A DNA stretch of 64,000 bases. Source: Calcarisporiella thermophila CBS 279.70 (Eukaryota > Fungi > Calcarisporiellomycota). The first letter of the stretch is position 1. Every line of letters begins with the position of its first letter. The DNA lies in the NCBI RefSeq assembly GCF_041956535.1, contig NW_027192198.1:380714-444713 (forward strand), given 5' to 3'. The position numbers were made by a program, and so were the translations under genes. The notes beneath the pieces are model-generated. The model saw nothing but the letters and a program-made list of their open reading frames with translations. It did not search any database and had not been told where the DNA came from. Below are positions 3,248 to 43,956 of the stretch, one piece after another.

Positions 3248-4559
3248 TTACAGGAGTCCAATGGATTTGAGGTTCGATGAAATGATAATATCATTGCAAG
3301 CGGCAATCGTGTATTTCACCTGAGTGGTGTCGGTAGCACATGTAAAATGAGTATAGATGCGCTTCTCCACCGACTGATTCAATGACACGAAACGCCCCTG
3401 GAGGTACTCGCAGGCGGCTTCGAAATCAGAGCCACCCTGATAATCGGGGAAATAGTGTTGTAGGGGGCTGCGCGGAAGTTTCTCTCTGAACAGATCTATC
3501 TTGTTGAGGAAGAGGATAATGCTGGTGTTCACAAACCATCTGCAGGCACGAGCACAGGAGGTGGGGGGAGGGGGAGGGCATAGATTAGCGGCCGAGACAT
3601 TTCATTTTTGGGGAAACAATAAAGCCAAACCGCTTACCTTGAATTGCAAATCGAATCAAACAAGGTCAATGCCTCCTGCATTCGATTCACCGACTCGTCC
3701 TCGCGCAGCACTTGATCGTACTCGGAGATGGCGACCAGGAAAATGATGGCGGTCACGTTCTCGAAACAGTGGATCCACTTTTTGCGCTCCGACCGCTGGC
3801 CACCCACGTCGAACATGCGGTAGGTCAGCTCTCCAATCTGGAAAGTCATCTCGGTGATGCCCGTGGTCTTGACCCGCGAGCGCAACACATCCTGGTCGGT
3901 GGGCATATAGTTCGGGTGCGAGATGCGCTCGACCGAGTCGAAGTAGCTAGCAACCAAAAGGGGGAGAGAGAAACAGGGGAGGTCAGCTTCTTTCCTTGGA
4001 ACGCATCCGTCCGGCCCCCTCTACATACTATTTTGCGGAGTCGTTCAGCTGGTACTCTCGACTTCTCTCGAAGCAGCGCCTGACACCCGCATCCTCCCAC
4101 AGCTCGGCAATGGCCACCCCCACCTTGGCAGGCAGTCGATCCCCCTCCATCTGCGAGGGCAATTGCATCACGATCTCGGCATGATGGATGCTGGCCGGAT
4201 TAACAAACCCAATATCCATCGCCTCCATCGCATTCAAAATGACCTTCATGCTTTGGATAGTGTTGGAGAAGATAATCTCCTTGAAGGATTCGCGTTCGTC
4301 GAGAGAGTAGCCGCCATCGTGGATCAATTTCATCTGCTTCAGAATCGTCGACTTTCCAGACTCACCCGCACCTACATGGTTCCAAAACAAAAAAGTAAAT
4401 ACACGAGGCGAGGCGATAACAAAGAGGGAGCCTCCACTTGCCTAGAAGGAGCAGCTTCACCTCCTTACGCAGGTTCATACGATCACGCTTGAGCTGGTCT
4501 TCAATTTCGTCGTTCTTGCGGCGGCCCTCCGCATCCTCAGTACTCATACAGCAGCCCAT
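3248..4559 (-). CDS. Heterotrimeric G protein alpha subunit (Gi/group I-like), 4 exons
   Basis: MGCCMS lipidation N-terminus; P-loop LLLLG|AGESGKST; [12 protein letters not shown]; [16 protein letters not shown]; FLNKIDLF; HFTCATDT; C-terminus KSIGLL. Intron 1 is GC-AG (4441-4372). Confidence 0.97.
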
Positions 4560-27753: not shown

Positions 27754-29635
27754 TTTATTTTATTTTATTCACTTGCTCTTCAGTGTTCAGTCCTAAGCCA
27801 AGATTGTAAACTGTCAATACGAGAAAGCCACACTACGCAGGGAAGAGAGCAAAGGGGGGGGGGGCTACCCTAAGGAGTCTCCGCGGTAAAGATACGTCGA
27901 AAATGACAATAAACCAGTTGTCAAGCTAATCAATGCGTAAGGAGGTGATGGTGGGCGAAAGGCCAGCTTTCGATGCGGGGAAATAACGAGGGGGATGGTG
28001 GATGGGATGGGAATGAGAGAGGAATGGCCAAACGCACCCGGCGAAAAATAAAGCGTGAAGATGAAAAGTGGTCGAGGAAACAGGAAATATCTCACTGCCG
28101 GAGTTTGATATGCCTGTTCATTTTCCTTTCAAATGGCCTGTGTGCAACTCAGCTTGCGGCGCTCCCATTGGTGTAAGCAATCAACAAGCGGCCCTTTTCT
28201 GATACAATCAGCGAAGGTCTCAGGCAGCGAATATTATTTTCAAACAAGATGAAGACGGCAACCAACGGAGCCTCCGTACAAGCTTATCTCCATGGCACCG
28301 TCTTCATTTCGGCTCTCCTTCTCCTTCCGGCCCAACCTCCAAAATTGCCTCCCACGGCCGGCTCTTCCGGCCGTCTGGGTCATCGCCCCCCGCCGCCCCC
28401 CAGCCCATCACCCCACTTGACGCTTTCTGGGCTAGGGGCCTCTCGGCGGGCAGTGCCACGCGCGTTCGGATTTCCTCTCTGCCAATGCAGACGCTTCGTA
28501 CCCTCCACAGCAGCCCGTGGAGGCAGGCGAGCCTTGCCTGTTTAGGGCCCTGGAGATGACAGAACCACTCTGTTTTTAATTAACTTGGATCGATTCCACC
28601 AATCTGGTCGTGGTGATTAAAAATACGCCAATGACACTAGGCCCAGATTGTCAATCGAATCAGGGCTGCATTTGGTAATCAATGAAGGATCCAGACGAGG
28701 TCGTCTCTGCAAATCGGGAAATCGGAATTGCCATCCTCCTTTGGACATGCAGTATGACGACGGATATGCTCAGTCTATCGAGCTAGGCAGGTATTCCAAG
28801 AATCATGGGCACGGCAGGAACTCTTGCCAAGAGCCTGCTTTACCACGAAAGTTGGCGGCTGTGGCTTGGAGGGGATCAAACTTGGGTTCTTTATAGCAAG
28901 ATTGAGTGGTTGGAAATCTCAGAATATTGGATGTTTCGGAAGCGATCTTCCTTCCCCCCCACCCCCTCCCATAATTTTGTTCAGAATTAGGACAAGAAGC
29001 CAAGAGGAGTGGGTTCACGATGGAATTGCGCGCCTAGTACTAATTTATAATTAATGACCGATTTTCTAATTGCCAACCTAACTCTACGCAATAGAATTAA
29101 AACCTCAGTTCTCGAAACATTTAATTACTAAATCTTGGAGGGGGGCTGATACAGCCCCTTAGTGCAATTCAGGACATCTTAGGTTAACTAACCAATCCCT
29201 AACTGTATAATGTACGCAGAGTATATTCGTATTTATTACAGTTAATAAAAAGCCGCTCGCGTTATGCGATATTTCGCTGCCCTCCATCTCCCCTTATATG
29301 TTGGACATGGTTGCGTAAGCAGGCTGTGCCAAATTGCTTGTCAGCGCAAATATCGCTGTACAAACCCTGTACACCGGACGCACGCTGTACCGCACAGCCT
29401 GTGAGGTGGACATTGGCCCCTGAAAACACCTGCCTGGCACACAAGGTGAGGCACTATATATAGAACCTGCCCTCTTTGTTTGAGCACCCTGGTGGCTTTT
29501 ACAACAAATGCGCCACGTCACGTGCGGGGAGCGACCGGCATCGTATTTTTATACGATGCCAGTCGCAACGAGCCACAAGCCACAGGCCCGTTTCGCCTGC
29601 TCACTCTGCACCAGCGTGTCCCCTCTCCCCCTTCA

Positions 29636-31567
29636 ATGGCCGCCTTACCCACCACCGATGCTGCCGCTGTCTTCGCTGCCCGCCGTTTCCTCAACTTTGC
29701 CGCCGAGCAGCATGATGCCAACTGCGCGTGGCTGCGGAGCGTGTTCGGCAAGGACAGCAACATCTACGATGGCGTGAAGAGCTACGAATGTGAGTCTGCA
29801 ATGAAGAACTTTGTTCGGTTTGCGCATTCGCGGGAGCATCCTTATCGCCAGAGCGAAGACGACGACGATGACGACGAACCATTCCAAGTGACGCCCGTCG
29901 ACGTTGCAGCGCTAGTGGTGATGACTGCCGTGCAAGATCATCCGCGCTACCATCACGTGGTGCAGGTCGCTGCGCGGTGCATTGCGCGCTCTGTAGTAGC
30001 CATGCTCCGCTCCCATCACGACAGCGCTCCATCTCTCGCCTCGGCATCTGCTATCAGCATCGAGCCGGAGGCCACGGCGAATGACACGTTTTCCGAGTAT
30101 AGTGAAGGATGGACAATTGGCCAGTTCTTTTGGGTTGGCAATGTAGAGCGGGCAGCAGCGCCCGATGCGCAGCTGCGCATTGCGCGTGCGCGAGCCGCTG
30201 GCGTGCATCCACACGAGGATGATGTGGCAATGTGCAGCAGCGTCGCTAGAGACGACGACATTATGCGCGCACGCGCCGGGCCGATGCGCGGCAACCCATC
30301 GGCCATTCGCTTGACCACGGGCGCCGACGTGCCGCCGTGCGACGCATTCTGGGCGGATGGTGGGTCGCATGAACCGCGGCTGCTGGCGCTGGTGGCGCTG
30401 GCCGAGGCGCGACTCGGCGTGCCGATTCCGGTGCTGGCTGGCGACGTGGTCGCCGACGATGACATGCCGAGCATGGGCATCGATGCCGCATTCCTCGTGC
30501 TGATGGCGTGCGGCGTGCTGGGCGGCGACGACACGTTAGATAACGGAGCCAAGTTTTTGCTGCGGCCAGCCACGATCAAGGCATTGCGCGACATTGGCGC
30601 CGGCAGCGCTGCTGGTACCCTTACCGGCGCTCCAGATGGTTGCGACGACATCGAGATGGTCGCCACGTACGCATTGCTACTTCGCCACAGCCAGTACGAT
30701 ATGTCCGCCGAGCCCAGCTATCCGAGCCTGCCTTACAAGCCGCTGTGGGGCATTCTTTTGGAGCCCAGCCACGAGCGCCGCTTTCCGGCATTAACCAGCC
30801 TGGCACGCGTCGCCGACATGGCGCGCAACGTGACCGATGATGACCGCATCGTGCTGTGCGATAGCTGTCAGTACATGCGCATCTTCTCGGTGGCGTGCGA
30901 CTGCGCCGACGCCGGTACGTGCGAAGTGTGCCGGTGCGCGGAGGTGCTCCGCAGCGTGTTCTGGCAAAACGCATTGCGGCCAGCAGGCGAAACTGGCTTT
31001 GCGCAACTTTCGATGTTGCGCAAGTACTGCTGGGACAGCGTGGGTGGGTCGAACACGACGCACCAATGGTTGCCGCCGCCATCATGCGCGTCAAGTGCAG
31101 TCGAACCGACAATGCTGTGCACCACCGCGGAGCCCAGCGTGCCGCTGCGCAGCTTGCTCAAGCTGGGCGTGTTTCCGAGCACCGTCGGCAGTCTGAATGT
31201 CTCCGGGCTGCCCGACGTGCCACTGATCCGGCCCGAGCACCAGTTCACTCCGGTGTACACGATGACTCAGCAGCTCGTGCTGGCTGCGGTTCCGCAGCGG
31301 TACGAGCTGGCGATGGTGGATGTGTACAAGCCGTGCTTGCCTGACAGACTACACAGCGTGCTAGGCCGCACGTACGAGCAGCCGCGACGGGCCAGTGAGG
31401 ACTATACGTCGCTTAAGCGCGAGACGATGGAGGCGCTGCACAGTGTGCGTGTTTGGGAGCGGAGAACCGATGTGACGAGCCAGTCTTGGTCTCAGAGGTA
31501 TGTTTGGCCTTCGACAATTCGTCACGAACTGCAGGACGACGTGCAGCTGTGGCTGACGCCAGAGTAA
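29636..31567 (+). CDS. Orphan GC-rich intronless protein (about 643 aa) with Cys cluster; possible foreign/viral origin
   Basis: The frame is open from 29480; first ATG at 29636 (MAALPTTD). TATATA at about 29455. Contains CDSC-x9-CDC-x5-CEVCRC. CG/GC-dinucleotide-rich, with none of the poly-C/G tracts or introns seen in flanking genes. Confidence 0.7.
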   Translation: MAALPTTDAAAVFAARRFLNFAAEQHDANCAWLRSVFGKDSNIYDGVKSYECESAMKNFVRFAHSREHPYRQSEDDDDDDEPFQVTPVDVAALVVMTAVQDHPRYHHVVQVAARCIARSVVAMLRSHHDSAPSLASASAISIEPEATANDTFSEYSEGWTIGQFFWVGNVERAAAPDAQLRIARARAAGVHPHEDDVAMCSSVARDDDIMRARAGPMRGNPSAIRLTTGADVPPCDAFWADGGSHEPRLLALVALAEARLGVPIPVLAGDVVADDDMPSMGIDAAFLVLMACGVLGGDDTLDNGAKFLLRPATIKALRDIGAGSAAGTLTGAPDGCDDIEMVATYALLLRHSQYDMSAEPSYPSLPYKPLWGILLEPSHERRFPALTSLARVADMARNVTDDDRIVLCDSCQYMRIFSVACDCADAGTCEVCRCAEVLRSVFWQNALRPAGETGFAQLSMLRKYCWDSVGGSNTTHQWLPPPSCASSAVEPTMLCTTAEPSVPLRSLLKLGVFPSTVGSLNVSGLPDVPLIRPEHQFTPVYTMTQQLVLAAVPQRYELAMVDVYKPCLPDRLHSVLGRTYEQPRRASEDYTSLKRETMEALHSVRVWERRTDVTSQSWSQRYVWPSTIRHELQDDVQLWLTPE

Positions 31568-37131: not shown

Positions 37132-40100
37132 TTATCTGCCCGTATTTCGCTCGGGGTCGGACTCGCCAAGCTCTTTTCCCTCCTCGTTTTCCTCCAGGCT
37201 ATCGATGCTGATCTCCAAGGGGTCTGCGGATCTCCTCAGGGGAGATCGGTCGACCGCTCTAAATGGATCGGATGCGGCCAGCTGAGATGGTAACTGCAGA
37301 GGGCTGGGAGGCGGCGAAAACCGATTGGAATGCAGTCTCACACGATGCGCCTTGGGCGACATTCTGGGGGAGGCGGAGAGGAGTTTGGGGAGAAGGCCCG
37401 TGCCCAGGATCATCTTGGGGGAGCTGGGGGGGAGGTGGGAGGACCACCGAGGGGCAAGCGGGGTGGATTGCGAGCTATTCGGCGGGTGGATGTGAGAGAC
37501 GCTAGCGGAGGTGGAGTTAGAGGGGCCTGTAGGGGCGAGATGGAGGTCGGGGTGGATGTGGTCCTCCCGGAGGTGCTCAGAAGACTCTACGAATAGGGAA
37601 GACCCAGCCGTTAGACACCATTGGGGTGAAGGAAGAAGAAAGAGACCATCACTCCGATGCAGGAGGGTGCTCACCTCGAGAGAACCCGGTCACTGGCCCA
37701 GGGTATGAGCTAAGGAAATGGAGGAAGTGGTCCTTGTTCCACCCTTCTAGCTCCCACACTCCCTTGTTGGTGCGCAGGGTTGCTTCGCACCGCTCCAAAT
37801 GCCTGACGACGATTTCCGTGGAGCTGATGCGCAGCAGCGCGAGACAATGCGCATCGCCCTGCGTTTTGGATTTACGCAGCATCAACATCCAGTCCAAGTC
37901 GCTGAGTATGAGAAGCTGGATCCGCCGCCAAGGGCGCAGAAAGCCATTGCGCCGCACGTTAAAGCCCCACTTCGACGACTAGCAACCGAAAAGGAAACAC
38001 AAAGAAAGGTCAGCTCTTTCCGTATCAACTGAAGACGGGAAAGGTGATTTTTTTTGGAGGGGGGGGGGGGTGAGGTTAAGCCAACTAGACATGGCTTAAA
38101 TCCAATAGCAAAAGTTACCTTTATCTTCTTCACCCATCTTGACTTAGAGTCCTCGCGGTGGCAGGTGAGCGCGGCCGGCGAGAGCTCGAAGTTGGCGAGG
38201 CTATTGTTTCCATCCTGTGCCACCGCTTCGGGCTGAGCACCCGTAATAAGCTTGAAAAAGTGGGGGCTCTCGATAACGTCGTTGCCTAATGGACTGTCGG
38301 GCGCCATCCCCGCGTTGAGTGGGTCCTCCATGGCGGCGCCGCTATTCCGCCTGATTATAAAGTGCAGCTTGGTCCAGAAGAGGAGCACAGTGCACGAAAA
38401 GACGCAGAGGAGAATCACCGACGATCGCAGGCTGAACTGCGCGTAGATGTTCACCGAGGGGATGTAGATAACTTGAAAGCCATGAAAGCATCGAAAATGG
38501 GAGGTTAGATATCTAATAGGGCCAGGGTGGATGTCTCGTTTTCTTCGCTTCCCCCACTTACCGGAGATCATGGCCAGAACGGGGACCGAGACGGTGTACA
38601 CCGAAAAGGAGATGAGCCTGCTTTCGTTGAAGGCGAAGTTGCGCACGTTGCGAGTCTTCCACGCGAAGATCAGGCAGCTGATGAGGAGCATGGCGTTGAA
38701 GCCGTACAGGAGCGTCAGCATGGTGATCTGGACGGTGTCGGAGGAGGAGACGCAAACCTCCTGGTAATCCTTGAAGCCATGAAAGAGGCGCGGCGTGGGG
38801 CTATCGATTCCAAACCAAATGCCATTCAGAATCTAAGATGAATCAGAGCGCACACAGGTCAAGTCAACCATCCATCCCCTCCCCGGGCCACATAATTCCT
38901 TTGTACTCACGATCTCCACGGCCAGGATGACGCCTCCCAGCGCTAAGAGGCGGCTATCCGGCACCGCCTTATTGACCACCATGGCCTTTTCTACAGAGAG
39001 CCAAATATTCCAGTCAAGATGCAATGGGGTGGGCCAATTTCCAGATTCCCGCTTACCAAAGATCTCGTAAATTCGGTACGTTTTGGCGAGCAGCATGCTG
39101 GATTCCGTTTGAAAGCAAGAGGCATGGTTTAGTCAACATTAGCGAAGTCCCGAGGAGGGGCCCAGTCCAGTCCCACCTACCCAAACACCAGTCCAAACGA
39201 GCAGCTGAGCACGATGGGGATTAGCCTACACTTGAACTCGGAAAGCCTCCCCAGATAGAGAAACACGTTCGTCAACGCGAGAAGCATGCCCGCCGCCATC
39301 AGGCACAAGAACAGGGGGCTCGCCGCCCGAACGACGGGGTGTGCACGATACTGCCAGATGATCACCAACGAGGTGGCCACCATGACCAGGAAGACCAGGG
39401 TGAGGGCGATGAAGAAGAGCCCGAGCGGGGAGCCGTACTCGATGACGATGGGCTGGGCCGGCTCCGAACAGTTGCCGTAGCGGTGGTTGGTGTACTCGAT
39501 GGGGCATTGGCACTGGACGTCGGCGGGTTGGAAGGCTCCGTCCATTTCACACGCGCCGTGCGCACACCCCACATCGCACGGCGAGCGCCCAAAGAGCGGC
39601 CGTCCCTGCCAGGTGAATTCGGTTCGGAGGAGGCCCAGCACTTGGTCGGTGACGGCGGAGATCGGCGCCACAAATTTGTAGCTCTGCAGGATGCTCTGCG
39701 CGGTGGGGTCCGTGTACGTCCACCACAAGAAGCGGAGGGCCTTCCGCATCCTCTCGGGGTCGGGCCAGTTGCGGGTGTGCAGAATGAGGTACGCGTAGCC
39801 GCACATCGGGTAGGACTCCGGGCTGGGGCCGTCCACGATGGCGGTGGGAGGGAAGGAGGCGCTGAGCGCAAAATCCTTCATGGCGCTCTCGATGCTGGTC
39901 TTGTTGGGCCAGGTCATGAGGCCCTGGCGGTTGAGGACAATGGCGCGCTTCAGCCCGTTGGTCTGGACGTCGGCATCGTCCATGTACCCGATCGAATAGT
40001 TGAGGGCGTAGATAAACTTGCCGATGCCGCTGTTCAGCGCCGCCCGCAGGTCCTTTCGTGGCCAGTTCGGCAGCGTGCTCGCCCCGACCCTCTCGGCCCA

Positions 40101-40913
40101 TGCGGGGCTGAAGGCGGAGAGGGCCGACGTGAACATGTAGGTCGTGCCGCTGCCGTCCTCGCGCACCACCAAGCGAATGGTTTCGTTGGGCAGGTGGACG
40201 CCGTGGTTGGTGCTCTGGATCAGGGGATCCGACCAGGTCATCACCGAGCCATTGAAGATCCCCACGATGGCCTCGCGAGAGAGGACGATGGGCGGGGCCT
40301 TCTTCAGCTCCGGAATGTTGTACGCAATCGAAATGGCGCCGGCCATCGTGGGCAGCATTCTCTAGGTTGCAAGACCATGTGTTATTAATTGTCTTTCTGT
40401 TTAGAAACGGTCATCAAAGCGAAAATTTCCGCGACAGAGTCTGAAGAGAGGGCATACCAAGTCATCCGAGTTTCGATAGTGGGTCGCGTTGAGGGGCGCC
40501 TCGCTCCCCGCGAAATCGACCGTGCCTGGCCCGGTGATCGCGTCGATGCCGGCCTGTGAGCCTATCGCCTCATAAGACACGACCACTTGCTCGTACGGAC
40601 GCGCATTATAAGTGATGGTCCACGCCGAATAGACGCTAAAAGGGAAGCTCCCACCCGCGCCTTTAATGTGGGTGATGTTCGAGTTGTCGGGAGTTTCAGA
40701 AACGAGGTTATGTGGATTGCGAGCTTCAAGACGGGTGAGAGGGAGGAAAGATGGGGGGCGGGGTTAGCGCGAAATTCGGGTTTAGGGTCATCCAATCTCA
40801 CACTCACATTCAGGCAACGCAGAGCAAAGTGGGTTCGATATGAGCCAAACGACAATGACAATAGTTAAATAGCGCCAAACATGAAGAGACCTGTGCGTCT
40901 GGCGCCTCGGCAT
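37132..40913 (-). CDS. PstS-type phosphate-binding protein fused to an EGF-like module and a class C (7tm_3) GPCR, multi-exon
   Basis: Signal peptide (MPRRQ...YLTIVIVVWLISNPLCSA). PstS motifs KGAGGSFP, YEAIGSQAG, VDFAGSEAPL, WSDPLI, VVREDGSGTT, SIGY, SYPMCGY. Six-Cys EGF-like module. 7TM motifs YRAHPVVRAASPLFL, LLAKTYRIYEIF, FAWKTRNV..FNESRLI. The 3' end is less certain. Confidence 0.9.

Positions 40914-42870: not shown

Positions 42871-43956
<1,086 letters not shown>

Follow-up and report, generated by a model that had tools for sequence, protein, structure and literature searches.

Here we describe a gene of the fungus Calcarisporiella thermophila CBS 279.70 whose product is a class C G-protein-coupled receptor (GPCR) that carries a PstS-type domain as its probable sensor. 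It occupies positions 40913 to 37132, minus strand, in a 64,000-nucleotide stretch of DNA (the window; contig NW_027192198.1, positions 380,714 to 444,713). The protein belongs to the non-animal 7tm_3 family and is neither a class C receptor of the canonical flytrap type nor a PstS transporter subunit. Judged from its sequence it is a good candidate for a sensor of phosphate at the cell surface, and we are inclined, somewhat more than evenly, to see in it an extracellular phosphate or oxyanion receptor that would signal via a G protein. Sensing of extracellular phosphate by eukaryotic cells is a question still unsettled; the known phosphate routes are intracellular SPX proteins with inositol pyrophosphates, the Pho84 transceptor and the allosteric response of CaSR.

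The joining of the two domains is independent of any splicing model, because both sit in one uninterrupted frame. The open reading frame (ORF) at 39177-40358 covers the C-terminal part of the PstS domain, a six-cysteine module and the first three transmembrane helices (TM1-TM3), and it scored 147.9 bits with TIGR00975 (E = 3e-43), 58.9 bits with PBP_like_2 and 46.6 bits with 7tm_3, the last two both above the Pfam cut-offs. The full gene model has nine exons and encodes 1018 residues without an internal stop; all eight of its introns are GT-AG, and its hydrophobicity profile displays one signal-peptide peak (residues 15-33) and seven transmembrane peaks. Database searches and folding used single exons or database proteins, and the nine-exon model was joined for the frame check and the alignment. 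An earlier note on this DNA, made from the letters alone, had proposed the single-frame fusion as well as the order signal peptide, PstS domain, six-cysteine linker, seven-transmembrane (7TM) bundle and tail. This order holds, with the addition of a putative PH-fold module in the tail that the note had omitted, and the class C motifs and pocket residues it quoted lie where it had placed them. The exons and their main elements are as follows.

Exon 1, 40808..40913, minus strand: ATG and a signal-peptide-like segment, residues 1-35; the N-terminus matches the NCBI model.
Exon 2, 40458..40723, minus strand: start of the PstS domain; PBP_like_2 at E = 5.5e-6.
Pocket codons in exon 2, minus strand: S61 and F62 at 40649-40644, S91 at 40559-40557, E110 at 40502-40500.
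Exon 3, 39181..40361, minus strand: remainder of the PstS domain, six-cysteine EGF-like linker and TM1-TM3.
Pocket codons in exon 3, minus strand: R191, D193, S195, G196 and T197 at 40163-40143.
Linker in exon 3, minus strand: C386-C422, at about 39578-39462.
Exon 4, 39057..39097, minus strand: end of TM3 with the class C K3.50 motif; borders as in Jimgerdemannia.
Exon 5, 38911..38990, minus strand: intracellular loop 2 (ICL2) and TM4.
Exon 6, 38562..38832, minus strand: cysteine of extracellular loop 2 (ECL2), TM5, ICL3 motifs and TM6; 7tm_3 at 54.4 bits, mGlu5 at E = 4e-8.
Exon 7, 38119..38471, minus strand: TM7 (proline of xPKxY is Thr) and a linker.
Exon 8, 37675..37978, minus strand: putative PH-fold cytoplasmic module, residues about 766-860.
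Exon 9, 37132..37586, minus strand: Ser/Pro-rich tail, probably disordered, and the stop codon.

Residues 55-381 aligned over their full length with the PstS proteins of Yersinia (E = 2e-44) and E. coli (E = 2e-41), and a PDB sequence search with the ectodomain returned phosphate-binding proteins in 19 of 19 matches. AlphaFold2 folded the ectodomain from an 81-row alignment with a predicted local distance difference test (pLDDT) score of 95.5 and a predicted TM-score (pTM) of 0.92. When this model was compared with solved structures by Foldseek it matched PstS with TM-scores of 0.92-0.93 by target and a root-mean-square deviation of 2.0; ranks 1-49 were phosphate-binding proteins, the molybdate-binding ModA appearing earliest at rank 50. 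Sequence identity to bacterial PstS (E. coli 1ixh, Yersinia 2z22, Burkholderia 5wnn) is about 30%. The ectodomain is of the PstS type, rather than a generic solute-binding domain, as the earlier note had supposed.

Alignment to 1ixh located the pocket residues S61, F62, S91, E110, R191, D193, S195, G196 and T197. Seven of these nine are identical to the pocket residues of E. coli PstS (T10, F11, S38, D56, R135, D137, S139, G140 and T141; contacts other than D137 after PMC6549937), and the two substitutions, T10S and D56E, are conservative. T10S is common within the family of PstS-bearing GPCRs; D56E was confined, among fungi, to the Calcarisporiella pair of paralogues. Across 33 GPCR-fused domains the nine pocket columns had a conservation of 0.82 vs 0.44 for the background, a value reached in 0 of 100000 random draws and partly circular because the search and the alignment are themselves guided by motifs of the pocket. 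The 80 PstS sequences taken from GTDB were collected by a pattern with the R-D-S-G-T motif, which makes their conservation there circular. From its residues the ectodomain likely binds phosphate.

The linker between the ectodomain and the membrane contains six cysteines. Its label as EGF-like rests on the cysteine spacing, the model and the ESM Atlas cluster name, because the Pfam EGF match is weak (E = 0.7). The 7TM region belongs to class C. The 7tm_3 profile was matched separately by exon 3 and exon 6, in keeping with what had been proposed, and the best PDB match of the 7TM region of a paralogue, VTP21DRAFT_9284, was GABA-B2 (E = 6e-20), followed by mGlu and CaSR. Class C features kept in the bundle are the serine of ICL1, the cysteines of TM3 and ECL2, K3.50 and the ICL3-TM6 motif with its glutamate in TM6. 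Neither an ANF_receptor type I flytrap nor a nine-cysteine domain is present in the protein, which has only PBP_like_2 and the six-cysteine linker. Downstream of the bundle, exon 8 aligned with residues 764-852 of the paralogue (E = 2e-7), and the tail region of the paralogue matched PH domains with TM-scores of 0.67-0.79 in its ESM Atlas predicted model. Pfam PH gave E = 0.057 on the orthologue and no Pfam match on exon 8 of the window gene. Exon 8 probably codes for a PH-fold module, the structural match having been made on the predicted model of the paralogue. By eye, a similar segment apparently follows the three ANF_receptor class C receptors of the genome; the PH-like tail looks like a general feature of Calcarisporiella class C receptors and would therefore not be specific to phosphate.

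The paralogue is full-length (996 residues; contig C5, 468026-471573), 57% identical to the window protein and has the same pocket string, including D56E. Codon differences between the pair are highest at the third position (0.54 vs 0.33 and 0.26). Two PstS-type domains were found in the genome, both on these GPCRs, and three further class C GPCR genes (contigs C2, C22 and C6) carry ANF_receptor ectodomains. G-alpha is encoded at more than 10 loci of the genome, which also encodes SPX proteins and several Pho84-like transporters; the PstS-bearing GPCRs would therefore add to the usual phosphate routes and not replace them.

These features suggest how the receptor could work. We picture a class C GPCR of the plasma membrane, with a two-lobed PstS-type (type II) domain in the place of the type I Venus flytrap. 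Orthophosphate, or arsenate, outside the cell would enter the cleft and be held by S61, F62, S91, E110, R191, S195, G196 and T197, and binding would close the lobes. Through the stiff EGF-like linker with its disulphide bonds this motion could reach the 7TM bundle of what is probably a dimer, either a homodimer or one with the paralogue as a possible heterodimer partner. The bundle would then activate a heterotrimeric G protein, and the PH-fold tail may bind membrane lipids or G-protein partners. Surface location, dimerisation, G-protein coupling and its output, and the physiological role are parts of this scheme that we infer.

Besides the circularity in the pocket statistics, several observations weigh against a phosphate receptor of this kind. 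D137, the partner of R135 in E. coli PstS, is absent from most chytrid members of the family. D56E in both Calcarisporiella paralogues, together with A136E beside the pocket, could alter affinity or selectivity. Scored by exon, TIGR00975 gave 148-151 bits, below its 205-bit equivalog cut-off; with this score, and with its fusion to a 7TM bundle in a eukaryotic gene, the domain stands outside the PstS subunits of ABC transporters. In TM7 the proline of xPKxY is replaced while the Lys is kept, the position being Thr in the window protein and its paralogue, Ser in Jimgerdemannia and Pro in the aphelid and Paraphysoderma members. Finally, a bacterial-like nM affinity would leave the receptor saturated in most habitats unless the affinity were lowered.

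The ligand could be a phosphate-bearing or related compound, such as the end of a polyphosphate, pyrophosphate, a sugar phosphate, a nucleotide, a phosphonate or another oxyanion. The changes D56E and A136E here and the loss of D137 in chytrids point to a remodelled pocket, paralogue expansions and tandem domains in the family suggest diversified ligands, and GrlD is a class C receptor that has polyphosphate as its ligand. The PstS pocket, however, buries its anion and leaves little space for esters, which counts against an ester ligand. The direct phosphate contacts are all kept or conservatively changed, and crystals of E. coli PstS mutants at D56 (D56N) and at D137 contained bound phosphate (PDB 1ixi, 1quk, 1qul, 1qui). 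We regard such a ligand as unlikely, although worth keeping in view. Less likely again is that phosphate acts as a structural cofactor or allosteric modulator, or that the window copy is the non-binding or non-coupling partner in a GABA-B-like heterodimer with its paralogue. The existence of two paralogues at 57% identity, GABA-B2 as the best 7TM match, the action of phosphate as a non-competitive antagonist of CaSR and the expectation that a saturated high-affinity site would behave as a cofactor all favour this idea, but the pocket string and the 7TM motifs are the same in both paralogues and there is no second ligand domain.

A G-protein-independent device, either capturing phosphate at the surface to feed Pho84-type transporters or signalling via the PH-fold tail, would be in line with the several Pho84-like transporters and SPX proteins of the genome and with the conservation of that tail. 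We consider it very improbable, since the class C intracellular motifs have been kept across fungal evolution and the ANF-type receptors of the genome seem, by eye, to carry a similar tail. That the window copy is truncated or decaying, as the NCBI model of 518 residues and three TM helices implies by stopping at an in-frame TAG in intron 3, deserves hardly any credence, for 8 of 8 introns are GT-AG at the Jimgerdemannia positions, including the phase-2 intron there, and the downstream exons are stop-free and score with 7tm_3.

The NCBI model, VTP21DRAFT_11006, is identical to the first 518 residues of the nine-exon model and terminates shortly after entering intron 3. Each of the eight intron positions is also occupied in the Jimgerdemannia orthologue, and the position of intron 1 is common to the window gene, the paralogue and Jimgerdemannia. 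The paralogue has no intron at the place of intron 3 and reads through, with five other intron positions in common. Because Jimgerdemannia has intron 3 there and the paralogue reads through, the NCBI model is most likely a truncated annotation; the receptor gene is intact by all sequence tests. Bacterial contamination was ruled out by the introns, the fungal neighbour genes, the 1.2 Mb contig and the orthologues sharing introns. No Pho4-type CACGTK box was found between 39270 and 46115, a result that is uninformative. Elsewhere in the window, the plus-strand neighbour at 42871-43956 resembles adenylate kinase by eye, and there is no sign of phosphate-gene clustering; a G-alpha gene lies on the minus strand at about 3284-4375. 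An intronless ORF of 695 residues on the plus strand at 29480-31567 is GC-rich (64% at 30001-31000), unlike its neighbours, and is possibly mobile or foreign.

The same architecture is widespread. PstS and 7TM domains occur together in about 30 of the best 150 homologue matches, and the survey of fungi and protists recommended in the earlier note found the pairing in many early-branching lineages: Endogonales (Endogone, Jimgerdemannia), chytrids (more than 10 genera), blastoclads (Paraphysoderma), aphelids (Amoeboaphelidium), a nucleariid (Parvularia), Plasmodiophora and an amoebozoan (Clastostelium). Several ESM Atlas clusters of at least 50 members have PstS and 7TM domains. No member of Dikarya is among the named matches, in a census that is incomplete, and homologue searches by word index had low sensitivity (3, 11 and 4 matches). 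Paralogues have expanded, with 4 entries in Jimgerdemannia and 3 in Paraphysoderma, and protists have tandem domains. Parvularia atlantis P0056 joins PstS, 7tm_3 and RGS in a single protein, and P0004, P0006, P0007, P0013 and P0094 each have 2-4 PstS-like domains in tandem, fused in some of them to an ANF flytrap or to multi-TM domains, TRP-like or other. Annotations in the family are often broken; the Endogone NCBI model RUS21415 omits TM2-TM4 exons that its contig contains. The PstS module with an intact pocket is also found on single-pass receptor cyclases. Receptor guanylyl cyclases with PBP_like_2, one TM helix, a kinase-like domain and a cyclase include P0029 (XP_074655677, Tubulanus), P0164 (Babylonia), P0070, P0108 and P0110. 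From their sequences the Tubulanus and Babylonia proteins are candidate animal phosphate receptors; no paper on PstS-bearing animal receptor guanylyl cyclases was found.

In phylogenies the receptor-fused domains separated from soluble, prokaryotic-type PstS with a support of 97 (FastTree), 86 (mixture-model quick tree) and 98/91 (LG+G4 tree), and the window protein fell in a 14-row clade of fungi and aphelids (96/95, LG+G4 tree). The soluble row P0089, which sits in a PhoB/PhoR-pstSCAB-phoU-type operon, adjoins the receptor branch. The LG+G4 tree is unrooted, its rows were picked after earlier trees with near-duplicates left out, and no donor can be named from the trees because of this preselection, the narrow prokaryotic sampling and the lack of a root. 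A single origin of the GPCR fusion was neither established nor rejected (approximately unbiased (AU) test, p = 0.20). Since the receptor-fused domains, including those of animal guanylyl cyclases, group apart from prokaryotic PstS, the recruitment of PstS to receptors appears ancient, and a recent transfer into the Calcarisporiella lineage is ruled out by the trees and by the wide spread of this old family. The idea of a recruited bacterial module has to be qualified in that the recruitment was not made in this lineage; overall the earlier interpretation is partly supported. One may speculate further, with slightly less than even confidence, that this is an old eukaryotic family of dedicated surface phosphate receptors, in which one PstS-derived module, taken up early on, became attached to class C GPCRs (in early-diverging fungi, aphelids, nucleariids, Plasmodiophora and amoebozoans) and to receptor cyclases (including the nemertean and mollusc guanylyl cyclases), would report extracellular phosphate directly, independently of uptake and SPX, and is apparently missing from Dikarya.

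That non-animal class C receptors swap ectodomains is well known. A 2026 review (PMC13308352) states that fungal class C receptors have not been validated experimentally, and the PstS-bearing GPCRs could give them a first ligand assignment. The family offers a direct test, since a ligand is predicted for its soluble ectodomain and the GPCR output lends itself to assays in yeast or human embryonic kidney (HEK) cells. Its close orthologues in Endogonales belong to plant-associated fungi, to which phosphate foraging is relevant, and the presence of this pocket on receptor guanylyl cyclases of animals extends the question past fungi.

Among the closest known systems is the Spizellomyces class C receptor SPPG_06488, classed as 'Glutamate', on which PBP_like_2 was listed by Krishnan et al. 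2012 (PMC3251606). The window protein has the domain order of this type of receptor, PBP_like_2-EGF-7tm_3(-PH), and the same ectodomain clade; by eye, the supplement sequence of SPPG_06488 also has the PstS motifs, six-cysteine linker and 7TM motifs, although it is without the D137 that the window protein keeps. With this listing the architecture was already on record, although the domain is given there as a Pfam label only and the word phosphate is absent from the paper. No paper linking PstS to GPCRs was found in the open-access literature, subscription journals not being covered. The domain pairing was thus listed in 2012, and the probable phosphate ligand of the family seems not to have been recognised before. 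Class C GPCRs of anaerobic gut fungi (Seppala et al. 2016, PMC5168858) likewise have a type II solute-binding domain instead of an ANF flytrap, no nine-cysteine domain and sometimes an EGF-like one, but their domains resemble sugar-binding proteins and not PstS. The 7tm_3 bundle of metazoan GABA-B, mGlu and CaSR has the same ICL1 Ser, TM3 and ECL2 cysteines, K3.50 and Glu in TM6 as the window protein, but these receptors use a type I flytrap, to which a nine-cysteine domain is added in most; CaSR itself responds to phosphate, which inhibits it via an allosteric anion site (PMC6795806). GrlD of Dictyostelium, another family 3 GPCR from outside the animals, responds to extracellular polyphosphate (PMC6724513), whereas Grl ectodomains in an amoebozoan survey were ANF, BMP or unrecognised, not PstS. 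Bacterial PstS is alike in fold and pocket; the window protein differs from it in its fusion to a eukaryotic 7TM bundle, its intron-containing gene, D56E and the absence of a PstCAB operon context. The Pseudomonas chemoreceptor CtpL, for which PstS is the sensing subunit (PMC8050422), comes near to what we propose for the window protein in that phosphate-loaded PstS triggers a membrane receptor, the difference being that there the two are separate proteins with a bacterial chemotaxis output.

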